From the NCBI RefSeq assembly GCF_030028105.1, contig NC_092376.1, forward strand, positions 169,475,613 through 169,539,612: a stretch of DNA of 64,000 bases, in the 5' to 3' direction. The stretch's first letter is position 1. Every line of letters begins with the position of its first letter. The position numbers and the translations under genes were made by a program. This document shows, piece by piece, positions 4,935-35,593 of the stretch. The notes under the pieces were generated by a model. That model had not been told where the DNA came from, ran no database searches, and worked only from the letters and a program-made list of their open reading frames with translations. The DNA is from Mobula birostris. Its lineage: Eukaryota.

Positions 4935-5141
4935 ATGAAGATCTTGCTGTTCCTTGCTTTCCATATTGCTTTCATGTCAATGGAGAATGTTGGATTCCAG
5001 GGTGCTGTTAGAGAAACTGTTGCCATATCACCTTCTTTATGGTGGGACCATGAGTCTACAGTGAACCAACAGAGAAAGGAATCAGTATCTGAGAGTATCA
5101 ATAGGCATCTCTTCCCGGCGGCCAATCTATTCTGGATATCA
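4935..5141 (+). CDS. Candidate first (leader) exon, ...INRHLFPAANLFWIS; start codon uncertain
   Basis: Consensus donor TCA|GTGAGT at 5142 is in phase 0 with the open frame from ATG 4935 (MKILLFLAFHIAFMSM...), which is the phase the 5896 micro-exon requires. The resulting 69-aa leader would be unusually long, and in-frame ATGs also occur at codons 14 and 16. Confidence 0.4.
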
Positions 5142-5895
5142 GTGAGTGTCTTTTGTTGTTAGAGCCTCACACTTCCATTAAATTAGAGAACATTACTTTA
5201 TATCTCTCACATACACTGTCAATGTCAGAGAATAAGAGAAGCATGAGACCTCACTGCCCACCTCCTCACAACATCCTGCTCTGATCTGGTCCATTGGCCA
5301 TTTGGCTGGTTCATTAGATTTTCTGATCATGTCAACTGTCAACAAGTGTTTGTTGGGATTTGCTGATACTCATTCCACAACATGATGTTACCGTGGAGAC
5401 CTGATCAACACATAGGCAGACACAAGAATATAATAATTTTTCTGACTTCCTATCCTCAGTTAGATCAATTTGTTTAGTTCCCGACCAGTGCAAATTATAA
5501 CAGTTCAGGACAATTTTAACAAGTGTGCTGTTCTTTACTGTTCTCACAACTGAAAGAGGAACCAAAACGATGCTGTCATTTTCTTTGGAAATGAAAAGAG
5601 TAATCTTTATCTATATTGTGACAGGAAGAGGGTGTGACTGTGAACAGTTACAGTTTGCAATTGGAATGAGCAAAATACTTTGTTTCTCTTTCCTTCAGAC
5701 TCCGAGGTGTTAAAAACATTGACTAAATCCACTCCAGATTTACTTCTGGTCATTTCAGAAGACTGGATCTACACGTTTCAGTATTTGTTTCACTCTGACA
5801 GGGAAAGAGATGGAACCTGTGAAATGAAGTTTTAAGCTGGCTGCAGCAAAATGTCCTCTCTTGTGATATTCAGTTTATTTGTTTCGCTCCTTCAG

Positions 5896-5911
5896 TCTGG
5901 TTTCACCCAAA
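5896..5911 (+). CDS. 16-nt leader micro-exon (SGFTQ + first base of K)
   Basis: Pyrimidine tract tttgtttcgctccttcAG precedes it and a perfect GTAAGT donor follows at 5912. Phase 0 in and phase 1 out join A+AA=K onto the D1 exon. Confidence 0.65.
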
Positions 5912-7269
5912 GTAAGTACTTTAGCTCACCGATTAGTCACTGTTGTTTTCTGCATTTTCAGTGCTTGTACATATCAGGAGGGACTGTGGATCCAGTGTGT
6001 CTGGACATTTAGTTGTTCCTTCAGTAAGGTTGTACGCAAGAAGTTAAAAGAAAATGACGTGGATGGTATTGGGTGTAATATGGAGATGTGCACCAAGGAT
6101 ATTCCAACAATTCAGGTGCTGTGGATATAGTTCAGCAAAACAGGTGAAGCGGACTGGAACTGAATTATTCAGAGGTTAAAAGAGTTCAAGATGATCTTAC
6201 CGAAACATACAAAATTCTGTGGTGTATAGAGTCAGGCCAAGAAAAATGAAAAAAAAAAGATCTTTTCTGTATACTAGTTATTGTTCAGGATTTTCAGTTG
6301 TATAGAGCTGTGTACACTCTGTCATAGCAAGTACAGCGATCAATAGCATTCTGGATGTTCAAGGAATTATGTAACATGGGGTCAGTAGAAGAAAGTGGTG
6401 CTGAGGGTCAGGTCAGACATGATCTTGTTGAATGATATAGCAGGAATGATGGGCTGAATGGTATACTGCTGCTTCAATATTATTACTTATTGAACAAAAA
6501 GGTTCTTGAACAAAAGGGGATAACGACACACATTTAAGTACTCTTTTATCTTTCTACTTCATGCTCATTATTTATTGCTATTTATTTATAACTGCATTTG
6601 CACAGATTATTCTCCATTGATCCTGTTTACAGTTACTGTTCTATAGATTTTCTATGTAGGCGCACAGAAAAAGAATCTCTGGGTTGTATGTGGTTCCATG
6701 TATGTACTCTGATAATATATTTCACTTTGAACTTTGAATTTCTTGAAGTCATACACTGGTTATTCAGAAAACAAGTGTGCTCTTGATGTCCACAGCTCCA
6801 CACCTTACAATCTGTCTAAAAATTCTTTCAGCTTCCACAAGACAAACAGCATCTCAGCTACTTTACCTGGAGTTTGGAGGAGCCATCACATTGCTTAATA
6901 TTATAAATATATTTTAGATGGGATACTTGTGTCCTCAGAAACTGAACAGGACAGCACAGCAATGGGCTATTCTTCCCACTGTGTCGATGTCAAACATGAT
7001 GTCAATTTAAACTGTATGACTGTCTGCACATTGTCTATATTGTTCTCCTCCTCTGTCTTCTCTCAAGCTTGTTTAAACACCTCTTCAATGTTGCTCCTGT
7101 ATCTGCTTCTACTAACTTCCCTGGCAGCAAATTCCAGGCCCCCTCTAATCTCTCCTTATAAAAACTTGTCTCATAAGTTTCATTTAAACATTCCCTCTCT
7201 CACATTAAAGCTATGCCATCTCGTGTTTCACTTTTACACACTGAGAAAACGAGTATCTCAGTTATGCCT

Positions 7270-8100
7270 CTTATAACTAAAAAATTCTCCAAAATCTCTC
7301 CTTGGCATTGGAAAAAAAGCAATACATTTGTCTAATTTCTCTTTATAGCTAATACTGTTTAATTCAAGCTACATCCAGATGAGACTCTTTCCCAGCTCTC
7401 CAAAGCCTCTAAACTGTCCACACTTTCTGTTTCACTGCGACTGGAACAGCACACAACACTCCAATGTGGCGTAACCAATGGTTTACACAGCTGCAACACA
7501 ACCTGCTGACTTTTATACTCAGCACCCTGACCATTGAAGGCAAGTATACTGCGAGGCTTCTTTACCAATCTATCAGAGACCAGTGGACTCGTACCACAAG
7601 GTGCTTGTGTACATCAGCAGCCCTGTGGGACATGGCATTTACTGTATATTTACCTCTTGCAATTGATGTCCTCAAGATCAACACATCACATTTGTGTGCA
7701 TTAAATTCCATCAGGCATTGCACTGTCCCAATTTATAACTGGTCTGTAAACTGCTGAATTCTATGACAACTTTATTCATTATCCACAATCCACTAACATA
7801 CCAAATTCCATTTTTCTCCAAATCATTGACATATATCAATGATCACTGTGGTACATGACTGGCAACAGACTTCCCGTCAGACTGACACCAATCTACCACT
7901 TCCCTCTGTCTCCTATGGCCAAACTGATTTGGAGTCCCACCTATCAACTCTCCATGGATCCTATGTGGTTTTATGTTCAGTATCAGTGAATCACTGGGGA
8001 TCATGTTGAAAGCTTTACCATGTCTGTGTATACAGCATTCACTGTCCTATCCTCACAAATCATTTGTTATCTCCTCAAAAAATGTCAATCAAGTTTGTAA
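7270..8100 (-). mobile_element. Degraded CR1 fragment
   Basis: ORF 7359..7568 (YKSQQVVLQLCKPLVTPHW). Confidence 0.55.
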
Positions 8101-8329
8101 GACAAGATGCCCCCATGCAGGGCATGCTGATTATTCCTAAAGCTGGTTGTCCAGATGTGAGAACTCCCCCTCCTAACAGGATTTTCAAACAATTTCCATA
8201 CAACTGATGTAAGACTCTCTAGCGTGTGTGGATTTTGTGAATAAAACATGTGAGATTCACCTGGCTTGGGTCTTATGTGCCTTGGTTGGAATAGCAACGT
8301 GTCTCTGAGCCGTCCTGGGGTGTGCTGAC

Positions 8330-11075
8330 ACCCACATGGTCATGTCGTGATGCAGAGGGTATGATAATGGAACCATCCAGGTCCTGTGGGCTAATTTAAG
8401 ACAATCTTCAAAACTACATTCAGGTTTACCTTTCCGAACTACAATAAAAGTCTTTTTGCTCCTTTTTCCAATGCAGAATAGACGATTGTAAGAGGGCTTA
8501 AGGAGGGATTGATGTGCATCATTGCAGACAAAAAGGAACGAGGCGGAACATAGGTCAACTGGAACCCAGTAAAGCTGTATGGCGTGGTGTGAGATAGGAA
8601 AAGGATTAAAGGAACTGATTTCTCTGAGCAAGGCAGATCGTTGCTGAGAAGCCAACCAAGTAGTCATGACATCAGGAATAAAATCACCCGCAGATAATGC
8701 CACTGCAGATAAACCAACTCACCTGCTGAGGGCAGCAAATCATGTTTTAGAGCCATTCCAAAACACAGGAGGACCCACAGGAGATGATCGTGCCAATATT
8801 TGACCATCAGAAGGGCCCTGAGAGCTGTCTTTAAGGAATAGTGAAACTGCTCACACAGGCCATTGGATTGCGGGTGATATGCTATGGTGTGATGTAGTTT
8901 AACACCGAGCTTCGGGACCACTGCAGCGCAGAGGTTGGGTGTGATTTGGGGACTACGGTCAGAAGAACTATCAGGTCGGGCCCTGAACCGAGTGACCCAG
9001 TTATTGTTGAATGCCCAAAACACGTCCACTGCTGTCATTGACACTCCAGAGACAAACTGTAGCCACCTGGTGGTGTGGTCCACCATGGTAAGGAGGTGTG
9101 TGAACCTACAGTTGTGGGCGGTGAGAGGACTAACCAGGTCCACTTTAATGTTGTCAAACCGTCTCTCTGGGACATGGAAAGCTTTGCCGGTGCCCGCATA
9201 TGACAATTAATCTCGCACTCCAGTCTCGCGCAACCTTTCTAAGGCCATGCCACACAAACTTTAGAGCAACCAGTTTCGGTGAAGCCTTGTCGCCAAGTTG
9301 CGAAAGGCTGTGAATGGAGTTATAAACTGTCTGCCTCCAGTTTGCAGGCACTATGGGGTGAGGGCAACCAGTTGAGACATCAGATAGGAGAGAAACTCCA
9401 GCGTCCCTTCAGCACGTGACCTCTATCCTGTAAGCCTCTATTCGGTAGTTTGGTCGGATGCCATGCCAGCTTAGTCAACCCTGATGTGTACGGCATCAAT
9501 GGCAGGCCATGAGAGGCAATCAGCCACAGCATTATTTTTCCCTTCAATGTGCTGTATGTCAATCATGAATTCCAAAATACAGGCCAGGTGGCATGGCTGC
9601 CATGCAAACCAAGGGCCTGATTCTTTGGCCATCACATACACAAAGGGTTTGTGGTCATTGAACACTGTAAACTGCTAACCCTCCAGTAGAAAACAAAATT
9701 GACAGATGACCAGATGTAGACCACGGAGCTCATGGTCAAACATCCCTCAGAGGGATAGAGGATCCAGCTGAAGAACATAAACGGCTACCACTCTCCTGTA
9801 ACCAACTGTCCACGCACGGCGCACACAGCAGAGACTAAAGAGTCAACAGTGATGGCTGTAGGTTATTGGCGAACAGGTGCGCCTGTTGAATCATGCTCGA
9901 AAGAGCTTGTTTAGTCTCATCAAATGCTCTGATCATGTCTGCTGACCACTCAAGAATGTGACTGGAGCTCTGCTTTTAAGGGCACTTTTCAATCGGAGCA
10001 GAATTTTAGCAGTTTGTGGAATTAAATGGTGATCGAAATTCATCATACTTTGAACTCTTTCTGTGCTTCAGTAGTGCGAAGCGGTGGAAGTCCATAATAG
10101 TGGTGCCCTTGATAGCTGGGGCCAGAAGGTGGCAAGAAATTTGATAGTAGACAACCAGAACAGGCATTTGGCGGGATCAATAAGCATAGAACGTTGGCTT
10201 AAGCACTTGAAAAGTATTCGGTTTTGGATGTGCTGGTGACAAGAATGTCATCCAGGTAAACAAAAAGATCATCTGAATCTTTTAACATAGAGTTGATTAG
10301 GCATGGCATTTTCAGCCCCAGTGGCAGGCATAGAAACTCAAATAGGCCAGACGGGTTTATAAACATGCAGCTTTGGGAATGTTCTCACTGCATGTTGGCA
10401 ATGAATGGTAGCTCCTGAGTAAGTCCACTTTAGAAAATTTCATCTTAATGACTAAACATGCTGAAAAACCTTGAATATGTGAGTCTGGGCAATAATTGGG
10501 TGTGGTGGTCTCATTCTGTTGGTGATAATCACTACATGGACGGCAACCACCATCGGGCTTAGTGACCATGTGGGGAGGTGAAGCCCGAGGGCGATTCGAC
10601 CCATGTACAATGTCAAGCATTTCCGTGTTTACAATCTCAGCTTTTGTTTTGGCCAGCTTTTCTGATACTTGTCTACACGGACGGGCATGGAGTGATGAGC
10701 CAGTTGTGCAAGTGTGGTGCCCAATCCCATGCTTTGTGACTATAGTGGAAACTGTGGGTTTGTTGAGGTTTGTGAGTTTGCCCAGCAAGTGAGTGAATTC
10801 ACATGTGCTGGTGCGTAGAAACATGGGAACATAGAAAGCCTGCAGCACAATACAGGGCCTGTCGCACACAGGAAATCTGCACCAAGCAGATGTCTGGCAA
10901 ATTTAGCCAAGACAGAATCCCATATGTAGCATCATCCACTGAAGCATCGCGTCACGTGTCGTGTCCCTGTTGCCACTGGCAGCCTCCATTGAGGATCCTT
11001 TGCTCTCTGCCTTATCGACGATGCCAGCAGCACACTCACTTCAGCAGCAAGATCACACAGCTAGTGTCACCAGCA
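8330..11075 (-). mobile_element. Decayed Ty3/Gypsy LTR-retrotransposon pol region (PR-RT-RH-IN)
   Basis: Minus-strand fragments in Gypsy order: protease remnant ~10830-11070; RT (ORF 10357..10869, YLDD at 10247-10258); RNase H (DHKP...HIEGKNNAVADCLS); integrase core (HPQSNGLCEQFH, ORF 8664..9206) and post-integrase tail. Many stops and frameshifts; LTRs not identified. Confidence 0.92.
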
Positions 11076-11614
11076 CATCCACTGCCAATTTCTCTCACCC
11101 TCCTCTCCACGCTAATACTGACCCCTGTCGATGAGCAATCAGAGTAAATTTTGTCTATCATCCCTTTTCAATGTCAATTGTTTTGTTTCAATGATACATG
11201 ACTGTAGCCATGACTACATTGAGCGTAGAGTATTATTGCCCATTTGTATTTGTAATGGATGCCACCTTGGTAAAGCAGGCAACATAATCAAAGTCTCCTT
11301 TCATCCTGGACATTCCTTTTTCTCCCCAATCCCATCGGGCAGAAGATGCAAAAGTCTGAAAGCATTTATCATCAGGCTCAATGAAAGCTTCTGTTCTGCT
11401 GTTGACGACAATGCAATGGATCTCTAGTACAATAAGATAGATTCTTGATCTCACAATCCACCTCATCATGGCTTTGCAGCGTATTACTTGCCTACACTGT
11501 ACTTCCTCTGTATCTGTAACAGTTTATTATGCATTGTGTAATTGCTTTCCCTTGTCCTGCCTGAAGTGCTGAAGCCATTATATGAACTGTGTAGAAGGCA
11601 GTTTAACAAAGCTG

Positions 11615-11995
11615 CCTCACCACCCCTCCCACAATGTGTATCTCCCACACCACCCTTCCCACAGTGTGTATCTCCCTCACCACCACTCCCACAGTGTGTA
11701 TCTCCCCCACCCCACCCCTCCCACAGCATGGAGTTCTCTCACCATCACCTCCCACAGAGTGGATTTCCCTCACCATCCCTCCCATTGCATTGTATTCTCT
11801 CACCACCCACCTACAATGTGGAGTTCCCTCACCATCACCTCCCACAGTGTGTATCTCCCTCACCACCTCTCCCACAATCTGTATCTCCCTCACCACCTCT
11901 CCGACAATCTGTGTCTCCCACACCACCACTCCCACAGTGTGTATCTCCCTCACCACCCCTCCCACAATGCACATTTCCCTCACCACCCCTCCCAC
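11615..11995. repeat. 30-bp minisatellite (unit ~ccacagtgtgtatctccctcaccacccctc), block A
   Basis: About 12 imperfect tandem units; source of the overlapping low-complexity ORFs. Confidence 0.92.
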
Positions 11996-12253
11996 AGTAC
12001 AGATTTCCCTCCTGTCCTTGGTACATATGGCAGTAATGAACCATCTTACCATTTTAATTGTGTTAGTGGTTTTTTTGTGATCAACTGATAATTGTAATAC
12101 TGCACCAATGGAACATTGATACTGAGTGAAATAGAATGAAACGTTTGTGATTTCATGTTGTAACATTTTCATTGTTTCTCTTTTTTAACAGAAAATCCAA
12201 AACATTTTTATATTTTTGATAAAATAGATATAATTGTCTTCACTGGACTGGAC
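11996..12253 (+). pseudogene. Duplicated intron end plus truncated D1 exon start (decoy acceptor AG at 12190-12191)
   Basis: About 260-bp direct copy of 12466-12727, offset 474 bp. It translates as NPKHFYIFDKIDIIVFTGLD and then runs into minisatellite. Confidence 0.9.
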
Positions 12254-12465
12254 ACAGTGTGTATCTCCCTCACCACCCTTCCCACAGTGTGTCTCTCCCT
12301 CACCACCTTTCCCACAGTGTGTATCTCCCTCACCAACCCTCCCACAATCTGTATCTCCCTCACCACCCCTCCCACAGTGTGTATCTCCGTCACCACCTCT
12401 CCCACAATCTGTATCTCCCTTCATCACCCCTCCCACAATGTGTATCTCCCTCACCACCCCTCCCA
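12254..12465. repeat. 30-bp minisatellite, block B
   Basis: About 7 units of the same repeat between the two copies of the D1 acceptor region. Confidence 0.92.
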
Positions 12466-12665
12466 CAGTACAGATTTCCGTCCTGTACCTTGGTACATAT
12501 GATAGTAATGAACCATCTTACCTTTTTAATTGTGTTAGTGGTTTTGTTGTGTTCAACTGTTAAAATAGTAATACTGCACCAATGGAACATTGATACCGAG
12601 TGAAATAGAATGAAACATTTGTGATTTCATGTTCTAACATTTTCATTGTTTCTCTTTTTTAACAG

Positions 12666-13007
12666 AAAATCTGAAACATTTTTATATTTTTGATAAGATA
12701 GATAAAATTGTGTTCACTGGACTGGACATTCCTGGAAATGGCTCTGTTGGCTGGGATTGGAAACCAAGCTACAAGCAAGGCACACAGCAACTTGTGACAT
12801 TTTATAAAGATGTATCCGGAGGGTGGAACCCACGTTGGGAAATACACTTCAAACGCTATGGCATCTTTCATGTTATGAACAATAAGGCTGGTACCATTGA
12901 TCTGATAATTACTCAGCCCACATCTAAATTTGCAGGATCTATCATCTTGGTGCAAAGAGAGCCCAGTTATGAAATCTTGAAGCAATATGAAATTTTTGCG
13001 ATCAAAG
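12666..13007 (+). CDS. Ig domain D1 exon (V-like, no cysteines): NLKHFYIFDKIDKIVFTGLDIPGNGSVGWDWKP...DLIITQPTSKFAGSIILVQREPSYEILKQYEIFAIK
   Basis: Acceptor tttctcttttttaacAG (12665), donor AAAG|GTAAAT (13008), 342 nt, phase 1-1, open. Contains a C-strand WxW, an E-strand L-I-I and an F-strand AG motif. Overlaps ORF 12710..13060. Confidence 0.85.
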
Positions 13008-13159
13008 GTAAATGGGACAAAGATTTGAAAAGTGTAAAAAATGTTTTTCTTCATGAATAATTTACTTTCCAGTACTGAACGTTTTACAGGGATCATGTGA
13101 GGTTTGTTTTCTCTGCTCATTTACACTCACAGGGAGAAAGTTCTGTTCATTTTGGTAAA

Positions 13160-14485: not shown

Positions 14486-14755
14486 TTGTAGCAAATCCAC
14501 GATCACCTGTGGAGGGCAGTGACGTCACCCTCAGCTGTACCATCTCCAGACTCCCAGATACCGTCAGTCTCCACTGGAAACCAGTGGGCTCATCCCAGCC
14601 GAACAGGAGGAACACCGATCAGATCCGGCTCAATAACACCGTCTATCTGATGGTCCGACACGTTACAGTGGAGGATGGGAAGTTGTATCAGTGTGAAGTA
14701 CAGGAAAACGGAAACATTGTTGGAACAGGGCAAGCAGACTTTACTGTAGACACGG
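14486..14755 (+). CDS. Ig domain D2 exon (C2-set): VANPRSPVEGSDVTLSC...LHWKP...EDGKLYQCEV...FTVDT
   Basis: Acceptor tcttatttctcacAG, donor G|GTAAG at 14756, 270 nt, phase 1-1. C-W-C pattern with 52-residue Cys spacing. Confidence 0.95.
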
Positions 14756-17205: not shown

Positions 17206-17279
17206 TTATGGCGGCTTCTCATCACTGCCTCCAGAATGGCATTGTAACATTTTAATGAGTTCTCCTCTCTTTCATGCAG

Positions 17280-17618
17280 ATCGATATGATAAACGTTACA
17301 CACTTTATCGCTCAGTTACGGATCACAGTGAATTCCACCTCTTCTGTTACAGTCATTATGTTTACTACAGTGCTGCCTGGACTTGGCTGTCACATGTTCA
17401 TCAAAGTCCGTGGAAAACAATTGCAACAGCATTGGAATCTCAGCCCGTGAATGTCAGTGAGAGCCACTTTGTGAATCGACTGATGCTCACAGAGACACCT
17501 TTTAACGGCAAGAATTTCAGTATGAGGGTTTTTCCTGTGGTGTTTGAAGATGCAGGAGAATACAAGTGTACTCTGGAAGCAAATGTATTTATGACAATGA
17601 GACTAATCACAGTTAAAG
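17280..17618 (+). CDS. Ig domain D3 exon (V-set): ...HLFCYSHYVYYSAAWTW...NRL...NFSMRVFPVVFEDAGEYKC...ITVK
   Basis: Acceptor ctctctttcatgcAG, donor AAAG|GTAGG at 17619, 339 nt, phase 1-1. Canonical D-x-G-x-Y-x-C motif with 74-residue Cys spacing. Confidence 0.95.
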
Positions 17619-17731: not shown

Positions 17732-17992
17732 TCACGGCTGAACCGTCTGATACAGTGACTGAGGGAGACGCCGTTGCCCTGAGCTGCTCTGTGTCTGGCG
17801 TCACTGCATCGACCAGACTGGTTTGGATCAATGGAGACGGTGAAACTGTTGGAGACAAAACACTGACTGGGGAAGAGAGATCACTGAGTCTGATCGTACA
17901 GAAAGCTGACAGAGGCAGAGGGAAATGGACGTGTGGTGTGTTTGATCAGAAAACTCTCCAGCTTTCAGTACCATATAATCTGGAAGTCAGAG
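17732..17992 (+). CDS. Ig domain D4 exon (C2-set with WxC): TAEPSDTVTEGDAVALSC...LVW...GKWTCGV...LEVR
   Basis: Acceptor tttttcttgtttccacAG, donor AGAG|GTAAG at 17993, 261 nt, phase 1-1. Cys spacing 49. The F-strand W-x-C is characteristic of CD4/LAG-3 family C2 domains. Confidence 0.95.
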
Positions 17993-20096: not shown

Positions 20097-20117
20097 GTCT
20101 AGACAATGAGCAATATA

Positions 20118-20919: not shown

Positions 20920-21024
20920 ATAACTACACCAATATTGCTATTATTGGAAGTCTAGTTCTTCTAGTTCTTCTTCTCATCATTATCCTGGGACTGGTGTTGT
21001 GTTTGAAGAAATGCAAGAGTAAAG
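20920..21024 (+). CDS. Transmembrane exon: DNYTNIAIIGSLVLLVLLLIIILGLVLCLKKCKSK
   Basis: Acceptor cttactcttctgccAG, donor AAAG|GTGAG at 21025, 105 nt, phase 1-1. About 23 hydrophobic residues followed by a basic stop-transfer stretch. Confidence 0.93.
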
Positions 21025-22129
21025 GTGAGATGCATGACAAAAATCTTAATGAAAGCCCAAATCCAAAACAAAATTATCATTGAGGATTTTATCTTAGATG
21101 CACTTACATGCAATCTGTTAAATATTGAGTGCATGCCAATGCCTGATGTGATACTTCTTAAGTAATTGTTTATGCTTTAAAACTTAGCATTGGTAGGGAG
21201 GGTTATGGTAAGGGTTTAGAATTCATTTGTGGTGAGAAATATGGTAGCTGCAGTTGTACCAAGAGTTAGAGCGATCGTTTTCACTCAAAGTTTGGACAAT
21301 AGTATATGCAATGAAAGGTCAATTTGCTGATAATTTGATGCTGGTGATGGGCAATGATCTTTACGTTCAAGCTTATTGTCATTCAACCGTACACATATAT
21401 ACAGCTAAACAAAACAACATTCCTCAGGAACCAAGGTGTAATTAGCTATGTAACTGACGGATGGAGTATAGTATAGGAAAACGGAGACCTTGAGAGGAGA
21501 ATGAAAAAAATAACTGATTATTTATATGAATGATACTACTAAATTTTGTGAGAAAAAGGGATACGAGTGCCCTATAGTGTGAAATACAAAGAGTTTGCAT
21601 GCAGATACAACAGGTAATTAGGAAGGGAGATAGAATATCTATGGAGAATAACAGTTAAGAAGTTTTTATTCAACTTTATAGAGCATGCTGAAATCGTATC
21701 TGGAGTATTTGTGATAGTATTGGTTTGCATACATAAGGAAGGATACGTGGATAAAATTCTCTGCATTGATTTCTGAAATGAAGGGCTTTAGAATTTACAG
21801 CAAAGTGTCCGTGTGCAGGTATCCAGAACTGGAGTGTGGGGAAATGGTTCAGAATAAGGGATTGTTCTTTTAAAATGGAATTTCTTCTGTGAGCTCTTGA
21901 TGCTTTGTAATTCTCTATTCTTGAGCAATGTGAAGGTGTGGATCATTCAAGGTGGAAATAGACATTTGTCTAAACTACAGTGGAGTTAAAGGGTGTGGAG
22001 AGAGTGGGAAGTGGTGTTATTCAATCATGATTAAACTGATTGGCACAGCAAGTTTTAGCGGTCAAGTGACTATTCTTGCTACGTCTTCTTAAGTTGATAG
22101 GGTTGTGAGTTGTGATTTCATTCCACCGG

Positions 22130-22360
22130 GATGCAACACAGAGCGTCATAGGAAGTCATTCCTGCCTGTGGCCATCAAACTTTACAACTCCTCCCTTGGA
22201 GGATCAGACACCCTGAGCCAATAGGCTGGTCCTGGACTTTTTTCCTGGCATAACTTACATATTACTATTTAATTATTTATGGTTTTATTACTATTTAATT
22301 ATTTATGGTGCAACTGTAACGAAAACCAATTTCTCCCAGGATCAATAAAGTATGACTATG
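22130..22360 (+). mobile_element. Rex1/Babar-like LINE 3' end
   Basis: Near-identical to the reverse complement of ~46095-46330; ends caataaagtatgactatgact. Confidence 0.75.
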
Positions 22361-23508
22361 ACTAGTATGCATTTGGATATCTATTTCAGTGTTCACAAAC
22401 TGACAACGGAGCTCTCCCTCAGTATTATATAGATGACCAGACCCAATCATGTGCCCATGATAAAGAAAAGGTCCTGATGCCAAAACACTTGAAAACAAAC
22501 TGCATTGTACTGTATCTTCATATCTGTGTCCAGTTTCATTACATGTTATAATAATGTATTTCATACAATGAAGCACTGCAGCAAATCAAGCATTTTATAG
22601 AGTTTTAGGAGAATACAAGGAAATCATAAGAAAAAATGAATGTGTTTTAATATGTGTCATCTATGTAAACAGATTCAGGAAATCAAAAACGAAAGCCTCT
22701 TCAAACAGGTGGAAATGAAGAAGAAACATCTCATCTTTATTCAAATACTGTTGAAATCCAGCAAATGCAAGGTAACATGGAAACATCTAAACCAAAACTG
22801 GGCTTTTACTCACCGAGTGTTCCAATGCTGTTGGCAATGGTTCAGTCACTTTTGCCATTTTCAGATTAGGAACTCTTTATGGCACAAGTTGTGTATTTAT
22901 TTAGCTTCACTCAAAACCTCAGAGGACTTGAGACAATTTGACAATTCTCCACAGTCTCACTTGTTGCTTTGTCACAGGCACACAAGACACACAAAGTGCT
23001 GAAACAACTCAGCACGTCAGGTAGCATCTATGGAAACGAATAGACAGACAACATTTTCCAACATCTGTAGACTTTCTCATGTTTATGATTTACGGATTTT
23101 ATATAATACATTTTCTCTATAGAGATCCTGAACAATTGCTCAAGTTGCTACAATCAGCCACCCAAAACCCAATGAATGTCATTCATTCAAAGCAGTGGAA
23201 ATGATCTGGAATATTTACAGTTGAGTTCACTACTAATTGATGATGTGATGTGGATACCAATGATTGTCAAATTTTACATGCAAGACAATGTATCACGTTC
23301 TAATTTTATTCTTCATTCCCTGTAAGCATTGGGAAAACATAGCATGCAATAATCACTTGCATGAAGTTAAATCTTACTGATGATTAACTTGCACCTTGAT
23401 GCATCCTAAAAATAATGATGCCATACTGACTGGATAATTGTTTACTTCCAGGAGTGATCCTGCATTGCTTGTGAAATCAGCCTTCTGCCATTAAAATAAT
23501 CTAATATA

Positions 23509-24067
23509 CACCCAGTGTACTTTATTAGGTACACCTATATACCTGCTCATTAACGGAAATATCTGATCAGCCAATCGTGTCAGAAACTCAATGCATAAAT
23601 GCATGCAGGCATGATCAAGAGATTCAATTGTTGTTCAATCCAAACATCAGATTGGGGAAGAAATTCAGTCTAAGTAAGTTTGACTGTGGAATGATTGTTG
23701 GTGCCAGACAGGGTGGTTTGAGTATCTTAGAAACTACTGATCTCCTGGGATATTCACACACACCCATCTCTAGGGTTTATAGAAAATGTTGTGAAAAACA
23801 AAAAAACATCAAGTGAGCAGTGGTTCTGAAAATGCCTTGTTAATGAGAGAGGTCAGAAGAGAATGGTCATAGTGGTTCAAGCTAACAGAAGGGTAACAGT
23901 AACTCAGATAACCACACATTACAGTGGTGGTGTGCAGAAGAGCATCTCTGAATAAACAACACATCAAATCTTGAAATGGATAGGCTACAGCTGTAGAACA
24001 CCATGAACATACACTCAGTGGCCATTTTATTAGTTACCGGTGATACCGAATAAAGTGGCCATTGAGG
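23509..24067. mobile_element. Non-autonomous Tc1-derived element
   Basis: Same terminal motifs, plus a remnant of a transposase N-terminus (LSKFDCGMIVGARQGGLSI, ORF 23577..23816). Confidence 0.75.
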
Positions 24068-24266
24068 ATATTTCACAAATTATCTTCAGAGATGAAGTTA
24101 TAGATTCTCTCTGCAATGAGCATTGCTTTTACATAGGATAGTTTTCTCTGATGGACAATACACATTCTGGTTGCTCTCTATAGCAATTGACTACTTTTTG
24201 TGTATATATATCTGGGAAAAATGTTTTAAAGTTAATCTGAATTAGAAAAATATGTATATTTTCCAG

Positions 24267-24341
24267 GAGATCAGACACCTGTAACTGAGACCAGTCATGT
24301 AGCTGAATATATGTCTGTCGATAACCAGTCAAAGCAAAAAG
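24267..24341 (+). CDS. Cytoplasmic exon 1: GDQTPVTETSHVAEYMSVDNQSKQK (Tyr motif AEYMSV)
   Basis: Acceptor tattttccAG, donor AAAG|GTAAG at 24342, 75 nt, phase 1-1, open, in non-repeat sequence. Confidence 0.8.
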
Positions 24342-27319: not shown

Positions 27320-27373
27320 ATACAGAGAAAGCTATTCATTATGGGGATATATACTTCAAAAATGAATCATCAG
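27320..27373 (+). CDS. Cytoplasmic exon 2: DTEKAIHYGDIYFKNESS (ITIM IHYGDI)
   Basis: Acceptor ttacttgtctctgcAG, donor CAG|GTAAT at 27374, 54 nt, phase 1-1. Matches IxYxxI. Confidence 0.82.
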
Positions 27374-28944
27374 GTAATGAAAACACTTTTTTCAAATTTC
27401 TTTTTCATTTTTGCTTTATCTTTTCAGGCAGTTAGTGCTGTGTAAGAAAATTCATTGCTGTTAGTCTCCTTCGAACAGCTAAGAAGATGCTGGTGTAAAG
27501 CTTCTCACTATGTACCTCATCAGGAAATTAGCAGCAGAGGCACAATCAGTTACACATGCATCTCTGAGTCAAATCAGTGGTTTAATTGTTTTAAGAATGT
27601 TGGTTTACTGGTATCCATCTGTCTCAAAGGACAATGGGTGAGGATCATCATCATCCCAGGCCTGGGCAGAAGGTATGGAGATCCTGAGATGCCCAGTTGT
27701 CAAGATCCCTCTCTTGGCTTCACCAGTGTAGTCCAAAGGAAAGCTTATGAAGCAATATGTTTGGCATCAGCCTTGTTGCAAGAGCTGCTGGAAGGATGTT
27801 CAATGACATCCAGCCACCTTAGGAGCTCCACTCCAGATTTGCGGTCTAGGTTCACTTCCATAGCCTACGTCTTTCCTGAGACTGCCCACAAGGCAGGGGG
27901 GCTACTTACTCATAGCTGGGTATCTGCTTCACGAGCACCAGGCCGTGTCCACACACTGGTGGGCTTGTATGCTACATCTGCAGCGGCCAGACCTCCTCCC
28001 CATTCTCTGTGACTGAGTCCGAATAAGTTCGACTTCATATGTCACTAGCAAGGGGGCATTACATGAGGCTTGCTGTTGGAGAGGTTATGTACTGGCAGCA
28101 GACTTACACATTCAGCTCACCTTTTCGCAAAACTGCTAGCCAGTGATGTAAGCTGAAAGTGAGAGCGACAAGCACTACCCACTGCACTAACACTCTAGAT
28201 CCATCACAACAACCATTTTGACACCAGTATTTTAAGATTATTAAAACACAGGAAACTATAATAATGGCCAAAAGTGCTGCTTTTCGGATAAAATGTTACA
28301 CTGAGGCATTGTTTGCACACTCGGGTGATCACAAAGCTCTTCATTTCAGTGTTCCTTTTGATAAATACATTCATTTACATATCAAATAGGAACACAATGT
28401 GGAATTTTGAAAGAAATATTCTACATGTTGTCTCAAATTATTAGAAATTGTATTGAGATTTCAGAACTTGAAACAAATAACAAGAAAACATAAAGGGCAG
28501 CCCAAGCACTCAATTTGTTATCGAATATGACAAAGCTAAATTGAATTTGTCTTTCTTTACCAGGATAATGTTGAGGGCTTCACAGGACAATTTACATGAA
28601 AGCTGCTGGGACTTAAGGACATGAATTATAGGGAAAAGTTGAGGAGGTTAGGACTATTCCTGGAAAGTAGGAAAATAAGGGAAGATTAGATAGAGGTATA
28701 AAAGATTATGAGGAGTACAGAATGAGTTAATGTATGCTTTTACCATTGAGCTTCTGTGAGACTAGAAATAGAGGTCATATGTTCTGGGTGGAAAGTTAAA
28801 TATTAAAGAGGAAGCTAAGGGGGAAGCTCTTTACACAGAGAGTGACATAAATATGGAATGACCTGTCTGCGGAAGTGGTACTAGCAATTTCAATTGCAAA
28901 ATTTAAAACAAGCTTGGACAAGTACATTTATGCAAGGGGTTTAG

Positions 28945-31900
28945 ATCATAAGATATAGGAGCAGAATTAGGCCATTTGCCCAACCAGTCTCCCCAACAGT
29001 TCAATCACGACCAATCCTATTTTTCCCCCTCCTCAGCCCCATTCCCTGGTCTACTCCCCATAACCTTTGATCCCGTGGCAATCAAGACCTTCACAGCTGC
29101 CTATGGTAACAAATTCCACAAATTCACCACCCTCTGGCTAAAGAAATTTCTCCAGATCTCTGTTTTAAATGGATACCCCTCTACCCTCAGGCTGTGCCCT
29201 TTTGTCCTATACTCTCACACACGGGAAACATCCTTTCCACATCTTCTCCGCCTGGACCTTTCAACATTCAAATAGTTTCAATGAAATCCCCCTCATCCTT
29301 CTAAATTTCAGTGAATACAGGCCCAGAGACATCAGAAGTCACTCATATAATAACTCTTTAATTCCCAGAATCATCCTTGTTAAACTCCTCTAGACCGCTC
29401 CAATGCCAGCACATCTTTTCCTGGATGAGGAGCTCAAATCTGTTCACAATAGTCAAGAAAAGGGCTCACCAGTGCCTTATAAAGCCTCAGCATCACTTCC
29501 TTACTCTATGTATCCTAGACCTCTTGAAATGAATGCTAACACTCCATTTGCCTTCCTCACCAGCAATTCTACCTGCATGTTAACCTTCAGGGTGTTCTGC
29601 GCATGGACTCCCAAGTCCCTTTGCATCACATATATTTTGGATTTTCTCCCCGCTTAGAAGATAATCTGCACATTTATTTTTTCTACCAAGGTGCATAACC
29701 ATGCACTTTCCAGCACTGTATTTCATTTGCCACTTTCTTGCCCATTCTCCTAATCTGTCTAAATCCTTCTGCAGCCTCCTTGTTTCCTTGACACTACCTG
29801 TTCCTCCACCAATCTTCATATCATCTGCAAACTTGGTAACAAAGCCACCTATTCCATGATCTAAATCATTGATAAGCATAAGCATAAAAAGAAGTGGTCC
29901 CAACACCGACCCTTGTGGAACACCACTAGTCACTGGCAGCCAACCAGAAAAGGATCCTTTTATTCCCACTCACTGCCTCCTACCAATCAGCCAATGTTCT
30001 AACCATGCTAGAAGCTTTCCTGTTATACCATGGGGTTATAACTTAGTAAGGTGCCTCATGTGTAGCATCTTGTCAAAAGCCTGAAAATCCAAATATATAA
30101 CATCCACTGTATCCCCTTTATCTATCCTACTTGCAGTCTCCTCATAAATTCCTACAGGTTCATCAGGCTAGAGTTTCCTTGAAGGAAACCATGCTAACTT
30201 TGTACTATCTTGTCCTGTGTCACCAAGTACTTCATCACCTAATCCCCAACATTGACTCCAGCATCTTCCCAACCACTGAAGACAGGCTAACTGGACTATA
30301 ATTTCTTATCTACTGCTTCCCTCCTTTCTTAAAGAGTGGAGTGACATGTACAATTTTCTAGTTCTCCAGAATCATGCCAAAGTCTGAAGATTCTTGAAAG
30401 ATCATTACCAATGCTTCCATAATCTCTAGTGCTACCTCTGTCAGAACCCTAGGATGCAGTTCATCTGATCCAGGTGATTTATGTACCTTTAGGTCTTTTA
30501 GCTTTTTCAGCACCTCTTTTGTAATAGTAATTGCACTCACTTCTCTTCCCTCATATCCTTTAACACGTGGCACACTGTTAGAGTCTTCCACAGTGCGAGC
30601 TGATACAAAATATTTATTTAGTTCATCTGCCATCTCTATGTTCCCCCTTATCATTTCTCTGGCCTCATTTTCTTGTGGCCCTATATCCACTCTCATCTCT
30701 TTTTTTTATATACTTGAAAAGGATTTTTCTATCCATCTTGATATTATTTGCTAGCTTGCTTTCATATTTCATTTTTTCCCTCTTAATAATTCTTTCAGTT
30801 GCTTTCTGTAGGTTTTTAAATGCTTTCCAATCCTCTATCTTCCTCAAACATGAGAAAAGCTTCCCAATCCTCCATCTTTCTGCTAATTTTTGCATCGTTG
30901 TATGCCCTCTCTTTTATTTTTACATTAGCTTTGACATCCCTTGTCAGCCATAGTTGAACTATTTTGTCATTTGAGTATGTTTTTTTTGGATTACATCTAT
31001 CCTGCAACTTCCTCATTTTCCCCAGAAATTCAAGCCATTTCTGCTCTGCTGTCATCCCTGCCAGCTTCTCCTTCCAATTTACATTGGACAACATCTCTCT
31101 CCTACCAGTGCAATTTCCTTTACTCCAGTGAAATACTGCTATATCAGATTTTACTTTCTCTATATAACATTTCAAGTTGACCTCAATCATATTGTGATCA
31201 CTGTCTCCTAAGGGTTCCTTTACCTCAAGCTCCACCATCACCTCCGGTTCATTACATAATACCCAATCCAGTATAGTAAGCTCATCGACAAACTGCTCTG
31301 AAAGCCATCTCATAAGCAGTCAACAAATTCACTCATTTTGAGATCCATTACCAACCTGATTTCCCCAATTGACCTGCATGTTAAAATCTCCCATGACATT
31401 CATAACAGTTCCCTTTTGACTCGCCCTTTCTATTTCCTGTTGCCATCTGTTGTCCACATCCCAGCTACTGTTTGGAGGCCTGTATATTACTGCTATCAGA
31501 GTCCTTTTACCATTGCAGTTTCTAAACTCAACCCACAAGGATTCAACATCTTCTGATCCTGTATCACATCTTTCTAATGATTTGATGCCATTCTTCACCA
31601 GCAGAGCCACACCTTCCTATCCCTCTGATACAATGTGTAACCTTGGACATTCAGCTCTCAACTACACGCATCCTTCAGCCACGATTCAGTGATGGCCACA
31701 ACCTGATACTCGACAATCTGTAAAAGTGCAACAAGATCAAGCACCTGATTTCTTATACTCCATATATTGAGATATGACACTTTGAGAAATGCATTTTCTA
31801 TCTTTTTTTTTGTTTCCTGAATGCACTAATACTCGCCCTGCTGGCTGCAATTGTCCTGTCATCTATCTGCCCTTCCTGAAAGTCTAACTGTGCACTGTCT

Positions 31901-32020
31901 TTGTTCTCCTACTATCTGTCCTGTCCTGAGTACTTTCACTACAGTTCCCAGATCCCTGGCAAATGAGTTTAAACCCTTCTCAATACCTCTAACAAACCTG
32001 CCTGCGAGAATATTGGAGGG
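28945..32020 (-). mobile_element. Long decayed CR1 LINE (ORF2 endonuclease plus RT)
   Basis: ORFs 31329..31610 (AVIYRPPNS...MGDFN), 30816..31313, 30358..30696 (KSPGSDELHPRVL) and 29580..29969 (VTSGVPQGSVLGPLLF...KFADD). Confidence 0.92.
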
Positions 32021-32159
32021 CTATGATCTACATGCCAGTCGATAGGACTAGGCATAATATCAGCGTGTCATGGACTAGATGGGCAGAAGGGCCTGTTTCT
32101 GTGTGGTGCTGCCCTCTGATTCTACAATATTTCAGTACCTCAATAACTAAATTATCATG

Positions 32160-33110
32160 GGGGCAAAAGTGAAAAAGGTGATGAAGGCCAGACTGAAGGT
32201 GTTATATTTGAATGAAAACTGTATACGGAATGTTAGATCATGTTGTACCACAATTGCAGATTAGTAGGTATGATGTTGTGGGCATCACTGAATCCCGGCT
32301 GAAAGATTATAGTTAGGAGCTTGACATCCAAGGACACACCTTGTATCTAAAGGACAGGCAGGTAAGAAGAGGGGGTGAGATTTCTGTGTTTGTAAAAAGT
32401 AAAATAAAATCCTTCACAAGAGGTGACTTCAGATTGGAAGATGCAGGATCCTTGTGGGTAGAATTAGGAAACTGCAAGGGTAAAAAGATCCTGATGGGAG
32501 TTATGAACAGGCTTCCAGTGGTCAGGATATGGGATACAAATTGCAATCGGAGATAGATAAAGATTGTAAAAAAGGCAATGCTAAGATAATAATAGGGGAT
32601 TGCAAGATGCAGGTAGCTTGGAAAAATCAAGCTGATGCTGGATCCCTAGAAATGGAATTTGTAGAATTCCTACAAGTTTGCTTTTTACAGCAGTTTATGG
32701 TTGATCCTACTAGGGGATCAGCTTTTCTGGAGTAGGTGTTGTATAATGAACTGGAGTTGATTAGAGAGCTTAAGGTAAAAGAAACGTTAGGAGACAGTGA
32801 TCATAATATGACAGAATTCACTCTGCAATCTGAAAGGGAGAAGCTAAAAATCAAACGTATGGTATCAGTATTACAGTGGAATAAATGGAATTACAGAGGC
32901 ATGAGAGAAGAGCTGGCCAAAGTTGATTGGAAGGGGACACTACCACAGATGACAGCAGATCAGCAGTGGGTGGAGTTTCTCTGAGCAATTCAGAGTGTGT
33001 AGGATAGATACATCCCGAAGATGAAAAGTATTTTGAAAGGAAGGATGAGGCAACAGTGGCTGACAAGGGAAGTCAAAGACAGCATAAAAGCTTAAGAGAG
33101 GGCAGCGAAT
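32160..33110 (+). mobile_element. CR1 endonuclease-region fragment
   Basis: ORFs 32341..32556, 32529..32735 and 32736..32984 (LGDSDHNMTEF). Confidence 0.8.
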
Positions 33111-33639
33111 ATATGCAAAAATATATGCAGGATGTCAGAGGCTTCCAGTCAGAGAGTTAACCATCTACTACCACTCTCTAGCTTCTCTCACAAAACCAGA
33201 TTCCCTTGAGGTGAGTGCAGTTGGTTCCACCTCACAGACCCCTAGCCAAGCCAGCCTTGCCACCAGTCCTGACAAGCAATAGGTTGAGAAGGCTGTTTCC
33301 CAACTCCGAAACAGCAAGATCTCTGGAGCAGACAAAACAATCAAATCCAATGGATGGACAGTGAAGGGACAAAATTTATTGTGAATTGATGGGTAAGGTT
33401 CCCCTCCAGGTTACATACCATCCTAAATCAGAGACATATCCACTATGCGTCATTATCACCGTCTGAATTCAGAGATTAAAGACGTATGGTCATAGAACAC
33501 TACAGCACAGAAAGAGTTTTTTCAGCCCATCTGGTCCCCTTAAACATTTCACCTTTCTGACAGGCTGCATCACTGTCAGGCATGGGTGGGGGTATGGGGT
33601 TTGTTACTGCACGGGATTGACAGAAGCTTTAGAAAGTTG

Positions 33640-34040
33640 AAAACTTAGTCAGCTCCATCATGGGTACTAGCCTCCATAGTATTCAGGACATCTTCAAGGA
33701 TCGGTGCCGAAGAAAGATGGCATCCATGATTAAGGACCCCCATCACCTAGGACATGCCTTCTTCTCATTGTTACAATCAGAAAGGAGATACAGAAGCCTG
33801 AAGGCACACACTCCTTGTTTTAGAAACAGCTTCTTTCCCTCTGCCATCCGATTTCTGTGGACATTGAACCCATGAACACTACCTCACTTCTTTATCATTT
33901 CTGTTTTTGTACTATTCTTAATTTAACTATTTAATATATCTATTAAAAATTACTGTAAATGTTTTTATATTTATCATGTACTTCTGCTATGTTAACAAAT
34001 TTTACGATGTATATCAGTAATATTAAACCTGATTCTGATT
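33640..34040 (+). mobile_element. Rex1/Babar-like LINE 3' fragment
   Basis: ORF 33660..33875 (IKDPHHLGHAFFSLLQSERRYRSLKAHT...RNSFFPSAIRFL); a related piece lies at ~54590-55020. Confidence 0.65.
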
Positions 34041-34800
34041 CTGATCTCCCATAACTGTTAGTTGTAGTCTCACCCTACCTGAGTGGAAAAAGCCTGCTTG
34101 CATTTACCCTATCAATACCCCTCATAGTTTTGTATACCTCTTTCAAATCTCCCCTCAGTCTTTTATGTTCTTGGGAATGAAGTCCTAACCTATTTAACCT
34201 ATCCCGATAATGGAGATCCTCAAGTCCCAGCAACTACCTTGTAAACTTTCTCTGCACTCTTTCAATCTTAATCACAATTTTCCTATAGGTGGGTGACCAC
34301 AACTGCACAGAATACTCTAAATTGGGCCTCAACAATGTCTTATATAATTTCAACACAACATCCCAGCTCCTGTACTCAGTACATTGATGTTTGAAGGCCA
34401 ACAGGCCAAAAACCTTCTTTGCAACTTTTCTACCTGTGATGCTACTTTCAAGAAATTATGGATCTATATTTCCATATTTCTCTGTTCTACCACACTTCTC
34501 AGTTCTCTACAGCTTACTGTGTAATACCTACCCTGTTAGTCCTCCCAAAGTGCAACGCCTCATTTTGTCAGCCTATTTTTCCAGCTGGTCCAGATCCTGC
34601 TGCAAGCCTTGATAGCCGTCCCAGCTGTCCATTACACCCCCAACCTTGCTGTCATCAGCAAAGTTGCTGATCCAGTTTACCCAGTTATCATCCAGATCAT
34701 TGACATAGGTAACAACAACAAACAGACCCAGGACCAATCCCTACGGCACACCACTAGTATTAGCCCTCGGATCAGAGAGGCAACCATCCCTACCCAACCA
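34030..34800 (-). mobile_element. CR1 3' fragment
   Basis: Nucleotide similarity to 61380-62050 and 38900-39500. Confidence 0.65.
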
Positions 34801-35342
34801 TGGGAATATCTTAATCAGAAAATACCAGTGCTTTGCCAGTATCACTGCCAGGAGAGGTTGATGAGCAAATGGAGCCAGTTGGGAAATATGAAAGTAGAGA
34901 CAGAGGCTGGGAGGTGATAAGTGGAGAAATCAAAGGTTGTCAGGTTCTGGAATATGATCAATAAAGAGTAAGATAAGTGGATGTAAATAAGGGAAAAATG
35001 ATGACCTTCGCTAAATATTCCATCATCAATATTTTGGGAATTATCATTTCCTAGAAAATTAACTGTTCCTTGGATTCACTTGAAAAAACACATGGCCAAA
35101 AATTCCTAACTGAGTTATCAGTGAATAATACCACTCATAAAGGAACTTAGTCCACTTGCTTCCCTGTGTAAATACTATAATTAGTTTGGATTTGACTCTC
35201 AGAGATGGCAACTAAGTCACTGTCAATTTGTGCCTTTGTTGACCTATTGTCTGTAAAAGGCAAAGGCGACACAAAAAGGATAGTTGTATCTTATTACGTT
35301 ATTAATTAATATTATCTTTAATTGTGTTTGCAATTATCACAG

Positions 35343-35386
35343 ATAGCAGACATGTCATGCAGGGCAGTAACAAATCATCAACTGTT
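35343..35386 (+). CDS. Cytoplasmic exon 3: DSRHVMQGSNKSSTV
   Basis: Acceptor gtttgcaattatcacAG, perfect donor GTAAGT at 35387, 44 nt. It converts phase 1 to phase 0, exactly what the last exon needs. Confidence 0.72.
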
Positions 35387-35522
35387 GTAAGTAAATCAAT
35401 TCCTATTGATCAAATCTTGAATTATTTTTTACTTGATGTTGCAAATTTATAAATTGTTCTGTAATGAAAAAGGTCTAAAGATAGATTACCTTTACAAATA
35501 TTTATTCTGTCTTCTCTTTCAG

Positions 35523-35588
35523 GATGTTGGTGATTCAAAGGATGATCAACGTGTTGTCATTTATGCACAAATAGCACAAGTAACATGA
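35523..35588 (+). CDS. Terminal coding exon: DVGDSKDDQRVVIYAQIAQVT* (ITIM VIYAQI)
   Basis: Acceptor ttctgtcttctctttcAG, phase 0, stop TGA at 35586-35588. Matches VxYxxI near the C-terminus. Confidence 0.85.
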   Translation, partial: DVGDSKDDQRVVIYAQIAQVT

Positions 35589-35593
35589 ATAAA
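35588..35593 (+). promoter_or_regulatory. Candidate polyadenylation signal AATAAA overlapping the stop codon
   Basis: Sequence TGAATAAA at 35586-35593. Whether it is used cannot be shown from sequence. Confidence 0.35.

Follow-up and report, generated by a model that had tools for sequence, protein, structure and literature searches.

Introduction

CD4 and LAG-3 have so far been treated as a two-member family of obscure origin, and CD4 was long believed to be missing from sharks. A tandem duplication of a V-C2 unit has been proposed as the origin of the ectodomain of both proteins, and a continuous G-to-A strand, which is rare among immunoglobulin (Ig) proteins, is typical of CD4 and LAG-3 (Takizawa et al., PMC10768021). 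Sharks have separate genes for the two, lying in tandem, with CD4 carrying a CxH motif and an extra tail exon and LAG-3 carrying FPAL(D/E) and a single tail exon; the same authors deemed the WxC motif of a lamprey V-C2 protein insufficient for membership of the family, and noted that the CD4 D1 residues contacting class II molecules of the major histocompatibility complex (MHC) are poorly conserved even among CD4s (PMC10768021). Here we present the analysis of a stretch of 64,000 nucleotides from the manta ray Mobula birostris (contig NC_092376.1, positions 169,475,613 to 169,539,612, hereafter the window), the forward strand of which contains a gene for a cell-surface receptor with V-C2-V-C2 Ig domains and several tyrosine motifs in its tail. 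The gene, which is real and expressed, probably encodes an inhibitory member of an undescribed family of paired receptors, distant sister of CD4 and LAG-3.

Identity of the Receptor and Extent of Its Family

A family-profile search identifies the product of the window gene as RefSeq XP_072120624.1 (P0127), a protein of 571 amino acids from M. birostris that NCBI calls "uncharacterized protein", and not CD4-like, the label that a first-pass annotation of this DNA had expected from automated pipelines. It is a type I membrane protein with V-C2-V-C2 Ig domains, a single span and a tail of about 117 residues; these lengths, which include a 99-nt exon, correct the 523 and approximately 87 residues that had been reported at first. 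The signal peptide (residues 1-20) is followed by D1 (21-134), which is without cysteine, D2 (135-224, with C152-C204 and LYQC), D3 (225-337, with C247-C321) and D4 (338-424, with C356-C405 and KWTC), then by a transmembrane span at residues about 430-451 and the juxtamembrane CLKKC (452-456). A Pfam scan found Ig domains in D2 and D4 and a weak V-set in D3, with no match in D1. The architecture of four alternating V and C2 domains plus a membrane span, with WxC in D4, had been recognized from the beginning, and it is upheld by the exon and domain structure, by a structural model presented below and by the sequence KWTCGVF.

The protein is not alone. Searching 1.84 billion representative proteins with the D3 exon (phmmer) produced 66 matches, many of them full-length relatives, and a search with a family profile produced 135 matches from about 20 elasmobranch species, organized in gene clusters; the family was present in all elasmobranchs sampled. 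Its close relatives are all elasmobranch proteins annotated as "uncharacterized", except for a few that bear names such as obscurin-like, VCAM1-like, CEACAM5-like or CD276 homolog. In M. birostris, clusters of consecutive LOC numbers comprise about 12 genes on one chromosome of 190 Mb, the products of the cluster being XP_072120621 to XP_072120630, XP_072120726 and XP_072120181; Hypanus sabinus has about ten family genes, and similar counts are found in skates, sawfish, white shark, whale shark and catshark. The family occurs in forms of about 500 residues with four Ig domains and of about 1000 residues with eight. Those with eight or more Ig domains (P0087, P0101, P0068, P0106, P0001) repeat modules of D3 type (YxC) and D4 type (WxC), and a catshark model of 1710 residues (XP_038652085.1), which has four D3 matches, may be a read-through of tandem genes. 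The nurse-shark entry AGQ17915.1 ("obscurin-like") is also a family member with eight Ig domains; its number follows that of a CD8-beta entry, AGQ17914, and the entry numbered after it is, judging by the number, probably the one that the elephant-shark genome study deposited as CD4-like.

More distant full-length relatives, with 25-35% identity over 350-470 residues, are present in sturgeons, bichirs, eels, tarpon, sucker and coelacanth. A search started from the sucker protein added 88 relatives from ray-finned fishes, mostly teleosts, spanning cyprinids (including zebrafish), catfishes, characins, salmonids, Umbra, mormyrids and eels; only one of them has a name, that of the zebrafish clone gene si:ch73-7i4.3. 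These searches, which were not designed to exclude tetrapod relatives, showed none, and the search from the coelacanth member returned only itself. We found no description in the literature searched of the family, of si:ch73-7i4.3 or of nurse-shark AGQ17915.1. Judged from these sequence matches, the window gene is one copy of a large, ancient and clustered multigene family. It had been proposed to be a lone third member of the CD4/LAG-3 group confined to cartilaginous fish, a view that gives way to that of a clustered family found also in ray-finned fishes and coelacanth.

Nearest Relatives of the Ectodomain

Which of the known receptors, then, stand nearest to this ectodomain? When the 16-row profile of the family was compared with 177,635 PDB sequences, LAG-3 ranked third and CD4 tenth; with a deeper profile of 49 rows, LAG-3 took ranks 1 (1.4e-15), 3, 4 and 5, CEA rank 2 and CD4 rank 6. 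The segment of the 16-row profile that runs from the F-G strands of D3 through D4 aligns both to the end of D1 plus D2 of LAG-3 and to the end of its D3, its D4 and its transmembrane region, so that the WxC of the family falls on the PWGC of LAG-3 D2 and on the PWQC of LAG-3 D4 (per-domain E values of 2e-05 and 8.5e-05). This motif is well kept in D4 of the family, with W in 45/49 and C in 47/49 sequences.

Predicted structure points in the same direction. An AlphaFold2 model of residues 19-428, built from the 49-row alignment (mean predicted local distance difference test score 88.5, predicted template modelling score 0.85), shows four Ig domains, D1 included, and DSSP assigns to it two strands of 16 residues, 105-120 and 308-323, that span both V-C2 junctions. 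In a Foldseek search of PDB with this model the first five ranks were LAG-3, CD4, CD4, LAG-3 and CD4; against the models of Swiss-Prot, each of the top 18 matches was a CD4 or a LAG-3, aligned over the entire ectodomain, and IGSF2/3 came next. Superposition of two domains gave 2.4 Å over 169 residues for D3-D4 of rat CD4 and about 3.1-3.5 Å for D1-D2 of human CD4, and four-domain CD4 had the highest Z (17.2) in the fold comparison. In the cluster library of the AlphaFold database the family's own bamboo-shark member came first (template modelling score 0.87); most of the other entries are unnamed, and a fish CD4 holds rank 7, a result that fits the kinship without deciding it. Internal comparison by HHalign aligned D1-D2 with D3-D4 as one unit (probability 98.5%, E 2.7e-15), D1 pairing with D3 and D2 with D4, and aligned D1 with D3 also by itself (probability 95.9%), which fits the model of V-C2 tandem duplication advanced for CD4 and LAG-3 (PMC10768021). 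On the basis of sequence profiles and predicted fold, no known protein stands nearer to the ectodomain than CD4 and LAG-3.

This conclusion needs to be set against the possibility that the likeness is generic or convergent, with the WxC of D4 acquired independently and the true kin to be sought among CEACAM, SLAM/CD2-Ly9, B7/CD276, nectin or pIgR-like proteins. Several observations weigh on that side. The likeness is distant, with 13-19% identity and per-domain E values near 1e-05; CEA, first or second with the profiles, is nearly equal on whole-sequence profile score, and it is the best single-sequence match of the D4 exon in PDB, at 3.7e-10 versus 0.05 for LAG-3. Of the other exons taken alone, that of D2 finds antibody constant domains, that of D3 finds weak matches in MXRA8 and pIgR, and that of D1 finds no match in PDB. 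A few members bear the NCBI names CEACAM5-like, obscurin-like, VCAM1-like or CD276 homolog, and the absence of cysteines from D1 recalls the V domains of CD2 and SLAM. D2 carries YxC in place of WxC, the position of the tryptophan being occupied by Y in 45/49, F in 3/49 and H in 1/49 sequences. Models specific for CD4 in Pfam give no match to the protein, and neither does NCBIfam. The support from the fold is, moreover, a prediction by a network whose training data included CD4 structures, and the caution expressed for the lamprey protein, in which a V-C2 WxC was not considered enough (PMC10768021), applies here also. We nevertheless regard a generic or convergent likeness as unlikely, because the deeper profile places LAG-3 first and in four of the top five matches, with alignments that cross the V-C2 junction and run into the membrane span; because Ly-9, in spite of having the same domain order, comes only at rank 22 behind the 18 CD4 and LAG-3 models; and because the rigid fit of two domains, 2.4-3.5 Å for CD4, worsens to 4.7-10 Å, or is limited to one domain, for nectins, JAML and CD166.

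Tail Motifs and the Lysine-Containing Partner

The tail of the receptor has tyrosines at positions 482 (HLYSNT), 507 (AEYMSV), 525 (IHYGDI), 529 and 564 (VIYAQI). The consensus (I/V/L/S)xYxx(I/V/L) of the immunoreceptor tyrosine-based inhibitory motif (ITIM) is present in IHYGDI (Tyr525) and VIYAQI (Tyr564), which lie 39 residues apart. Two details of the remaining sites count against an inhibitory reading: the first motif of the window gene is YSNT, versus YSNV/I in the family, and AEYMSV has Ala, not Ser, at position -2. Since both depart from the motif forms, the window gene has only two canonical ITIMs. The tail peptides quoted in the first-pass annotation are all found on the forward strand, at about 21000, 24266, 27319, 35342 and 35523, and the two canonical ITIMs and AEYMSV listed there are retained, but the tyrosine motifs conserved across elasmobranchs are four rather than three. 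The corrected tail also has neither of the motifs whose absence had been remarked: there is no Cx(C/H) of CD4 type, the sole cysteines being C452 and C456 of CLKKC, and no (F/Y)xxL(D/E) of LAG-3 type, no F or Y having L at +3.

Across the family, for which motifs were counted over 169 sequences, the tails of the homologues are modular, combining YxN(V/I), (S/A)EY(A/M)x(V/I), EDI(H/Q)Y(G/A)x(I/V/L)xF and a terminal SS(V/I)IYAQ(I/V)A. Motifs of ITIM type occur in 71/169 sequences: I(H/Q)Y(G/A)x(I/V/L)xF is found in 70 and (V/I)(I/V)YAQ(I/V) in 50, in both sharks and rays. The AEYMSV-type motif is present in 42, and the members from bony fish retain chiefly YxN(V/I), with one or two ITIM-like motifs besides. 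A second class, comprising approximately 29 of the 169 sequences and likewise represented in sharks and rays, has a short tail and a lysine within the transmembrane segment, which reads W-I-x-x-(V/I)-(S/A)-G-Y-L-(F/L)-V-K-L.

One protein of this second class, XP_072120726.1 (P0144) from the manta, is identical to the product of the window gene at 111/114 positions of D1, 78/90 of D2, 91/113 of D3 and 71/87 of D4; in the transmembrane region identity is 9/35, the two proteins being unrelated from the stalk onward. By analogy with described systems, the combination of a near-identical D1 with a short tail and a membrane-embedded lysine is what characterizes paired inhibitory and activating receptors, and it bears out the guess of such a lineage made when only the ITIM-tailed gene was in view. 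The closeness of the pair is uneven, with 97% identity in D1 but 81-87% in D2-D4, and this excess in D1 suggests either recent gene conversion or selection that keeps the distal domain of the partners alike. A tblastn search of the window with the C-termini of the lysine class detected no lysine-containing transmembrane exon, so that the inhibitory and lysine forms are separate genes; an alternative activating exon inside the window gene was ruled out by the same result.

Could the protein instead serve mainly in adhesion or scaffolding, its tail tyrosines being used for sorting and endocytosis (YxxΦ) or for positive signaling through Grb2 or PI3K? The YxxΦ signal overlaps the ITIM by definition, and YxN(V/I), the oldest tail motif and the one kept across bony fish, is of Grb2 type. 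We find this most improbable, considering that the two ITIMs are full, including position -2, and that their flanks (EDIHYGSIxF and SSVIYAQIAQ) are kept in sharks and rays, and that the lysine-containing counterpart with its near-identical D1 has the signature of a paired immune receptor.

For an inhibitory member of a paired family, we infer the following steps from established ITIM biology. The membrane-distal domains would bind a ligand, for which MHC class II would be a guess by analogy, and Src-family kinases would phosphorylate the tyrosines of the tail; the ITIMs of Tyr525 and Tyr564, and perhaps Tyr507, would recruit SH2 phosphatases of the SHP-1/SHP-2/SHIP type, by which the activation of the cell would be damped, and Tyr482 (YSNT) could bind an adaptor of Grb2 type. 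The lysine-containing paralogue, with its near-identical D1, would share this ligand, and its positive signal would pass by way of a DAP12-like adaptor.

Separation from CD4 and LAG-3

The first-pass annotation had placed the receptor within the CD4/LAG-3 family. What holds of this placement is the kinship to CD4 and LAG-3, the closest relatives known by profile and predicted fold; strict membership fails because D2 has YxC and the tails differ. The sequences are best read as those of a distant relative that shares the build of the ectodomain. That the window gene might simply be the CD4 or LAG-3 of the manta, a true orthologue whose tail is peculiar to its lineage, can hardly be entertained, for although it shares with them V-C2-V-C2 domains, the WxC of D4, the best fold matches and, with CD4, a multi-exon tail, sharks own separate CD4 and LAG-3 genes (PMC10768021), the catshark has CD4 on Chr 16 at 86.75 Mb and its family genes LOC119965406 and LOC119965407 on a record of 244.3 Mb, the bichir holds a LAG-3-like protein (XP_039619596) that is distinct from its family member (XP_039615180), and the manta genome has about a dozen copies, the window gene having neither defining motif in its tail. 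From its size the record of 244.3 Mb must be among the largest chromosomes, and by size only, the family genes and CD4 of the catshark would seem to be on separate chromosomes. None of the genes neighboring CD4 and LAG-3 was seen in the window.

Exon Structure and Transcripts

The coding region consists of eleven exons on the forward strand, and their spliced translation is identical (100%) to residues 21-571 of XP_072120624.1, with the 99-nt exon included. The first coding exon, at 5851-5911, encodes the signal peptide MSSLVIFSLFVSLLQSGFTQ and the first base of a Lys codon (phase 1). The first 20 residues of the RefSeq protein (MSSLVIFSLFVSLLQSGFTQ) map there, its ATG has A at -3, as in a good Kozak context, and its donor is of consensus type (CAAA/GTAAGT); the same signal peptide is present in every close paralogue and orthologue. 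On this sequence comparison, 5851-5911 is the true first coding exon and replaces the one previously placed at 4935-5001 (MKILLFLAF...). The latter, which together with the Ig, transmembrane and tail exons seen at first gives an open frame of 540 residues, is not supported, given the RefSeq start and the conserved signal peptide at 5851-5911.

Each Ig domain is then encoded by one exon of phase 1/1 with AG/GT borders: the V-like D1, with zero cysteines, at 12666-13007 (100% match to XP_072120624.1); the C2-type D2, with the canonical YxC in LYQCEV, at 14486-14755 (Pfam Ig_3, 1.9e-09); the V-type D3 (C247...W...C321) at 17280-17618; and the C2-type D4, with the WxC of KWTCGVF, at 17732-17992. 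The exon 20920-21024, also of phase 1/1 and with AG/GT borders, encodes the stalk, the transmembrane helix (IAIIGSLVLLVLLLIIILGLVL) and the juxtamembrane CLKKCKSK. Beyond it the tail is encoded by five exons. The first of these, 22673-22771 (DSGNQKRKPLQTGGNEEETSHLYSNTVEIQQMQ, with Tyr482 in YxN), had been missed, and came to light as an extra match at 22681-22782, with about 60% identity, when the tails of homologues were searched against the window by tblastn; it has an acceptor in cag and a donor in gtaaca, with phase 1 at both ends, and is confirmed by RefSeq and by RNA. Since its 99 nt are a multiple of three, the earlier chain stayed in frame without it. The other tail exons are 24267-24341, with AEYMSV (Tyr507; S/A-E-Y-A/M-x-V in homologues); 27320-27373, with the canonical ITIM IHYGDI (Tyr525); 35343-35386, a spacer of phase 1/0 (SRHVMQGSNKSSTV); and 35523-35588, the last coding exon (DVGDSKDDQRVVIYAQIAQVT), which carries the canonical ITIM VIYAQI (Tyr564) and the TGA stop and matches RefSeq at 100%. 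The original chain is consequently sound in its four Ig exons, its transmembrane exon and its four small tail exons, but not in its first exon nor in its omission of 22673-22771.

RNA evidence came from four runs of one study that contain the D3-D4 exons, the contigs of which were mapped to the window. In each run, one contig of 490-670 nt joins 22673-22771 to 24267-24341 and then to 27320-27373, and extends through 35343-35386 and 35523-35671, with GT..AG introns and 0-1 mismatches over the chain; its loose 5' end before 22671 corresponds, in all four runs, to the last 30 bases of the transmembrane exon 20920-21024, and the loose end before 35340 to the end of exon 27320-27373. Because contigs of four runs join them, the junctions of the tail are all transcribed as in RefSeq, and the tail exons are expressed, which answers, for the tail, the call for an RNA check made when the gene was first noted. 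Among the joints listed, none skips from 21024 to 24267; a tail without the 99-nt exon is ruled out as the main form, given that each of the four runs has 22673-22771 in its contig, although a minor isoform that skips it may exist. The AATAAA that lies directly 3' of the stop (35588-35593), taken at first as the end of the gene, is not the sole 3' end, as the contigs reach at least 35671. Clustered A>G differences between RNA and DNA are found about 400 nt 3' of the stop, at 36003 in 4/4 runs and at 36006, 36057 and 36060 in three runs each; this cluster, near 36003-36060, could reflect either an allele or A-to-I editing within repeat-derived sequence.

Surroundings of the Gene

A tblastn search with homologues revealed no second family gene in the window, the rest of which is debris of long interspersed nuclear elements (LINE) and Tc1 elements. 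Fragments of LINE-type reverse-transcriptase/endonuclease reading frames and a remnant of a Tc1/mariner-like transposase, at 29583-31616, 59152-61117 and 44617-45688 (all on the reverse strand), sit in the large last intron and downstream of the gene, and very deep RNA contigs cover intronic repeats at 23.6-24.0 kb and 25.8-26.8 kb. Near D1, a unit of 474 bp is repeated 1.9 times at 90% match in 11825-12700 (also 11615-11996 and 12253-12469). This repeat duplicates the acceptor of D1 and its first 23 or so codons upstream, at 12185-12253, within 30-bp minisatellites of Pro-rich appearance, and this copy is a possible decoy acceptor.

Evolutionary Implications

A large conserved family that is apparently unstudied offers a concrete outgroup for the origin of the MHC class II co-receptor and of the checkpoint. 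It adds a multigene system of paired receptors to the innate-type receptors of fish, beside NITR, DICP and LITR, and indicates that clusters of "uncharacterized protein" in elasmobranch RefSeq conceal a coherent family that deserves a name. It also supplies molecules amenable to testing, with regard to ligand, recruitment of SHP and expressing cell type. A bolder proposal, which we consider doubtful, is that the lineage sister to CD4 and LAG-3 survives in this family. In that case a paired-receptor family would have given rise to the CD4 co-receptor and the LAG-3 checkpoint as specialized offshoots, the ITIM-like FxxL of LAG-3 would be a decayed ITIM, and binding to MHC class II or to MHC-like ligands may persist among the family's members in fishes.

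Comparison with Described Receptor Systems

Compared with CD4, the window receptor is alike in its rod-like V-C2 pairs, with a continuous G-to-A strand predicted by the model, in its multi-exon tail and in its juxtamembrane cysteines, CLKKC. The equivalent CVRC of CD4 is palmitoylated. The receptor differs from CD4 in having ITIMs and no Cx(C/H) motif for binding LCK, in belonging to a multigene family and, as it appears, in lying at another locus; lacking that motif, it cannot serve as a co-receptor that delivers LCK. LAG-3 shares with it the V-C2-V-C2 order and the WxC in the F strand of D4, is its best match by profile and by Foldseek in PDB, with profile alignments that run from the F-G strands of the V domain through C2 into the transmembrane region, and is inhibitory, as the window receptor would likewise be by its predicted ITIM tail. 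LAG-3 differs in that it has WxC also in D2, a tail of one exon with (F/Y)xxL(D/E) and a single-copy gene next to CD4 (PMC10768021), whereas the window gene has YxC in D2, five tail exons beyond the transmembrane one, four tyrosine motifs and many sister copies, and its D1 is without cysteines and without the long loop.

Ly-9 (SLAMF3) resembles the receptor in its V-C2-V-C2 order, in a V domain without disulphide, in tyrosine switch motifs and in a multi-exon tail. It stands apart by its fold rank of only 22, and the top profile matches include no SLAM protein. The C2 domains of SLAM proteins carry two disulphides. The tails of CD22 and other Siglecs, BTLA, SIRP-alpha and CEACAM1 are alike in combining a YxN site of Grb2 type with several ITIMs, even if their ectodomains are unrelated in order and type. 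At the level of short motifs only, EDIHYGSIxF, IQYATLNF and SEYASV of the family resemble EGIHYSELIQF of CD22, LHYASLNF of CD33, VTYSTLNF of CEACAM1 and SEYASV of SIRP-alpha.

DICP proteins, compared here by description, have a similar D1a-D2a-D1b-D2b layout, a split into inhibitory and activating forms and a range covering teleosts, holosteans and coelacanth, but they have the C23/C104 pair, DICP-specific cysteines and a charged Arg, whereas D1 of the window gene is without a cysteine pair and the charged residue of the family is Lys. Going by names, identity with DICP appears unlikely, no dicp-named relative being present among the 88 from ray-finned fishes, which include Danio rerio and carp. 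More generally, KIR, LILR, SIRP and PILR, together with NITR, DICP and LITR of fish, are alike in being clustered multigene families, in having ITIM-tailed members beside short-tailed ones with a charged transmembrane segment and near-identical ligand-binding domains, and in having variable numbers of copies and domains. What distinguishes the manta receptor and its relatives from all these paired families is their Ig lineage, that is, V-C2 rods like those of CD4 and LAG-3.

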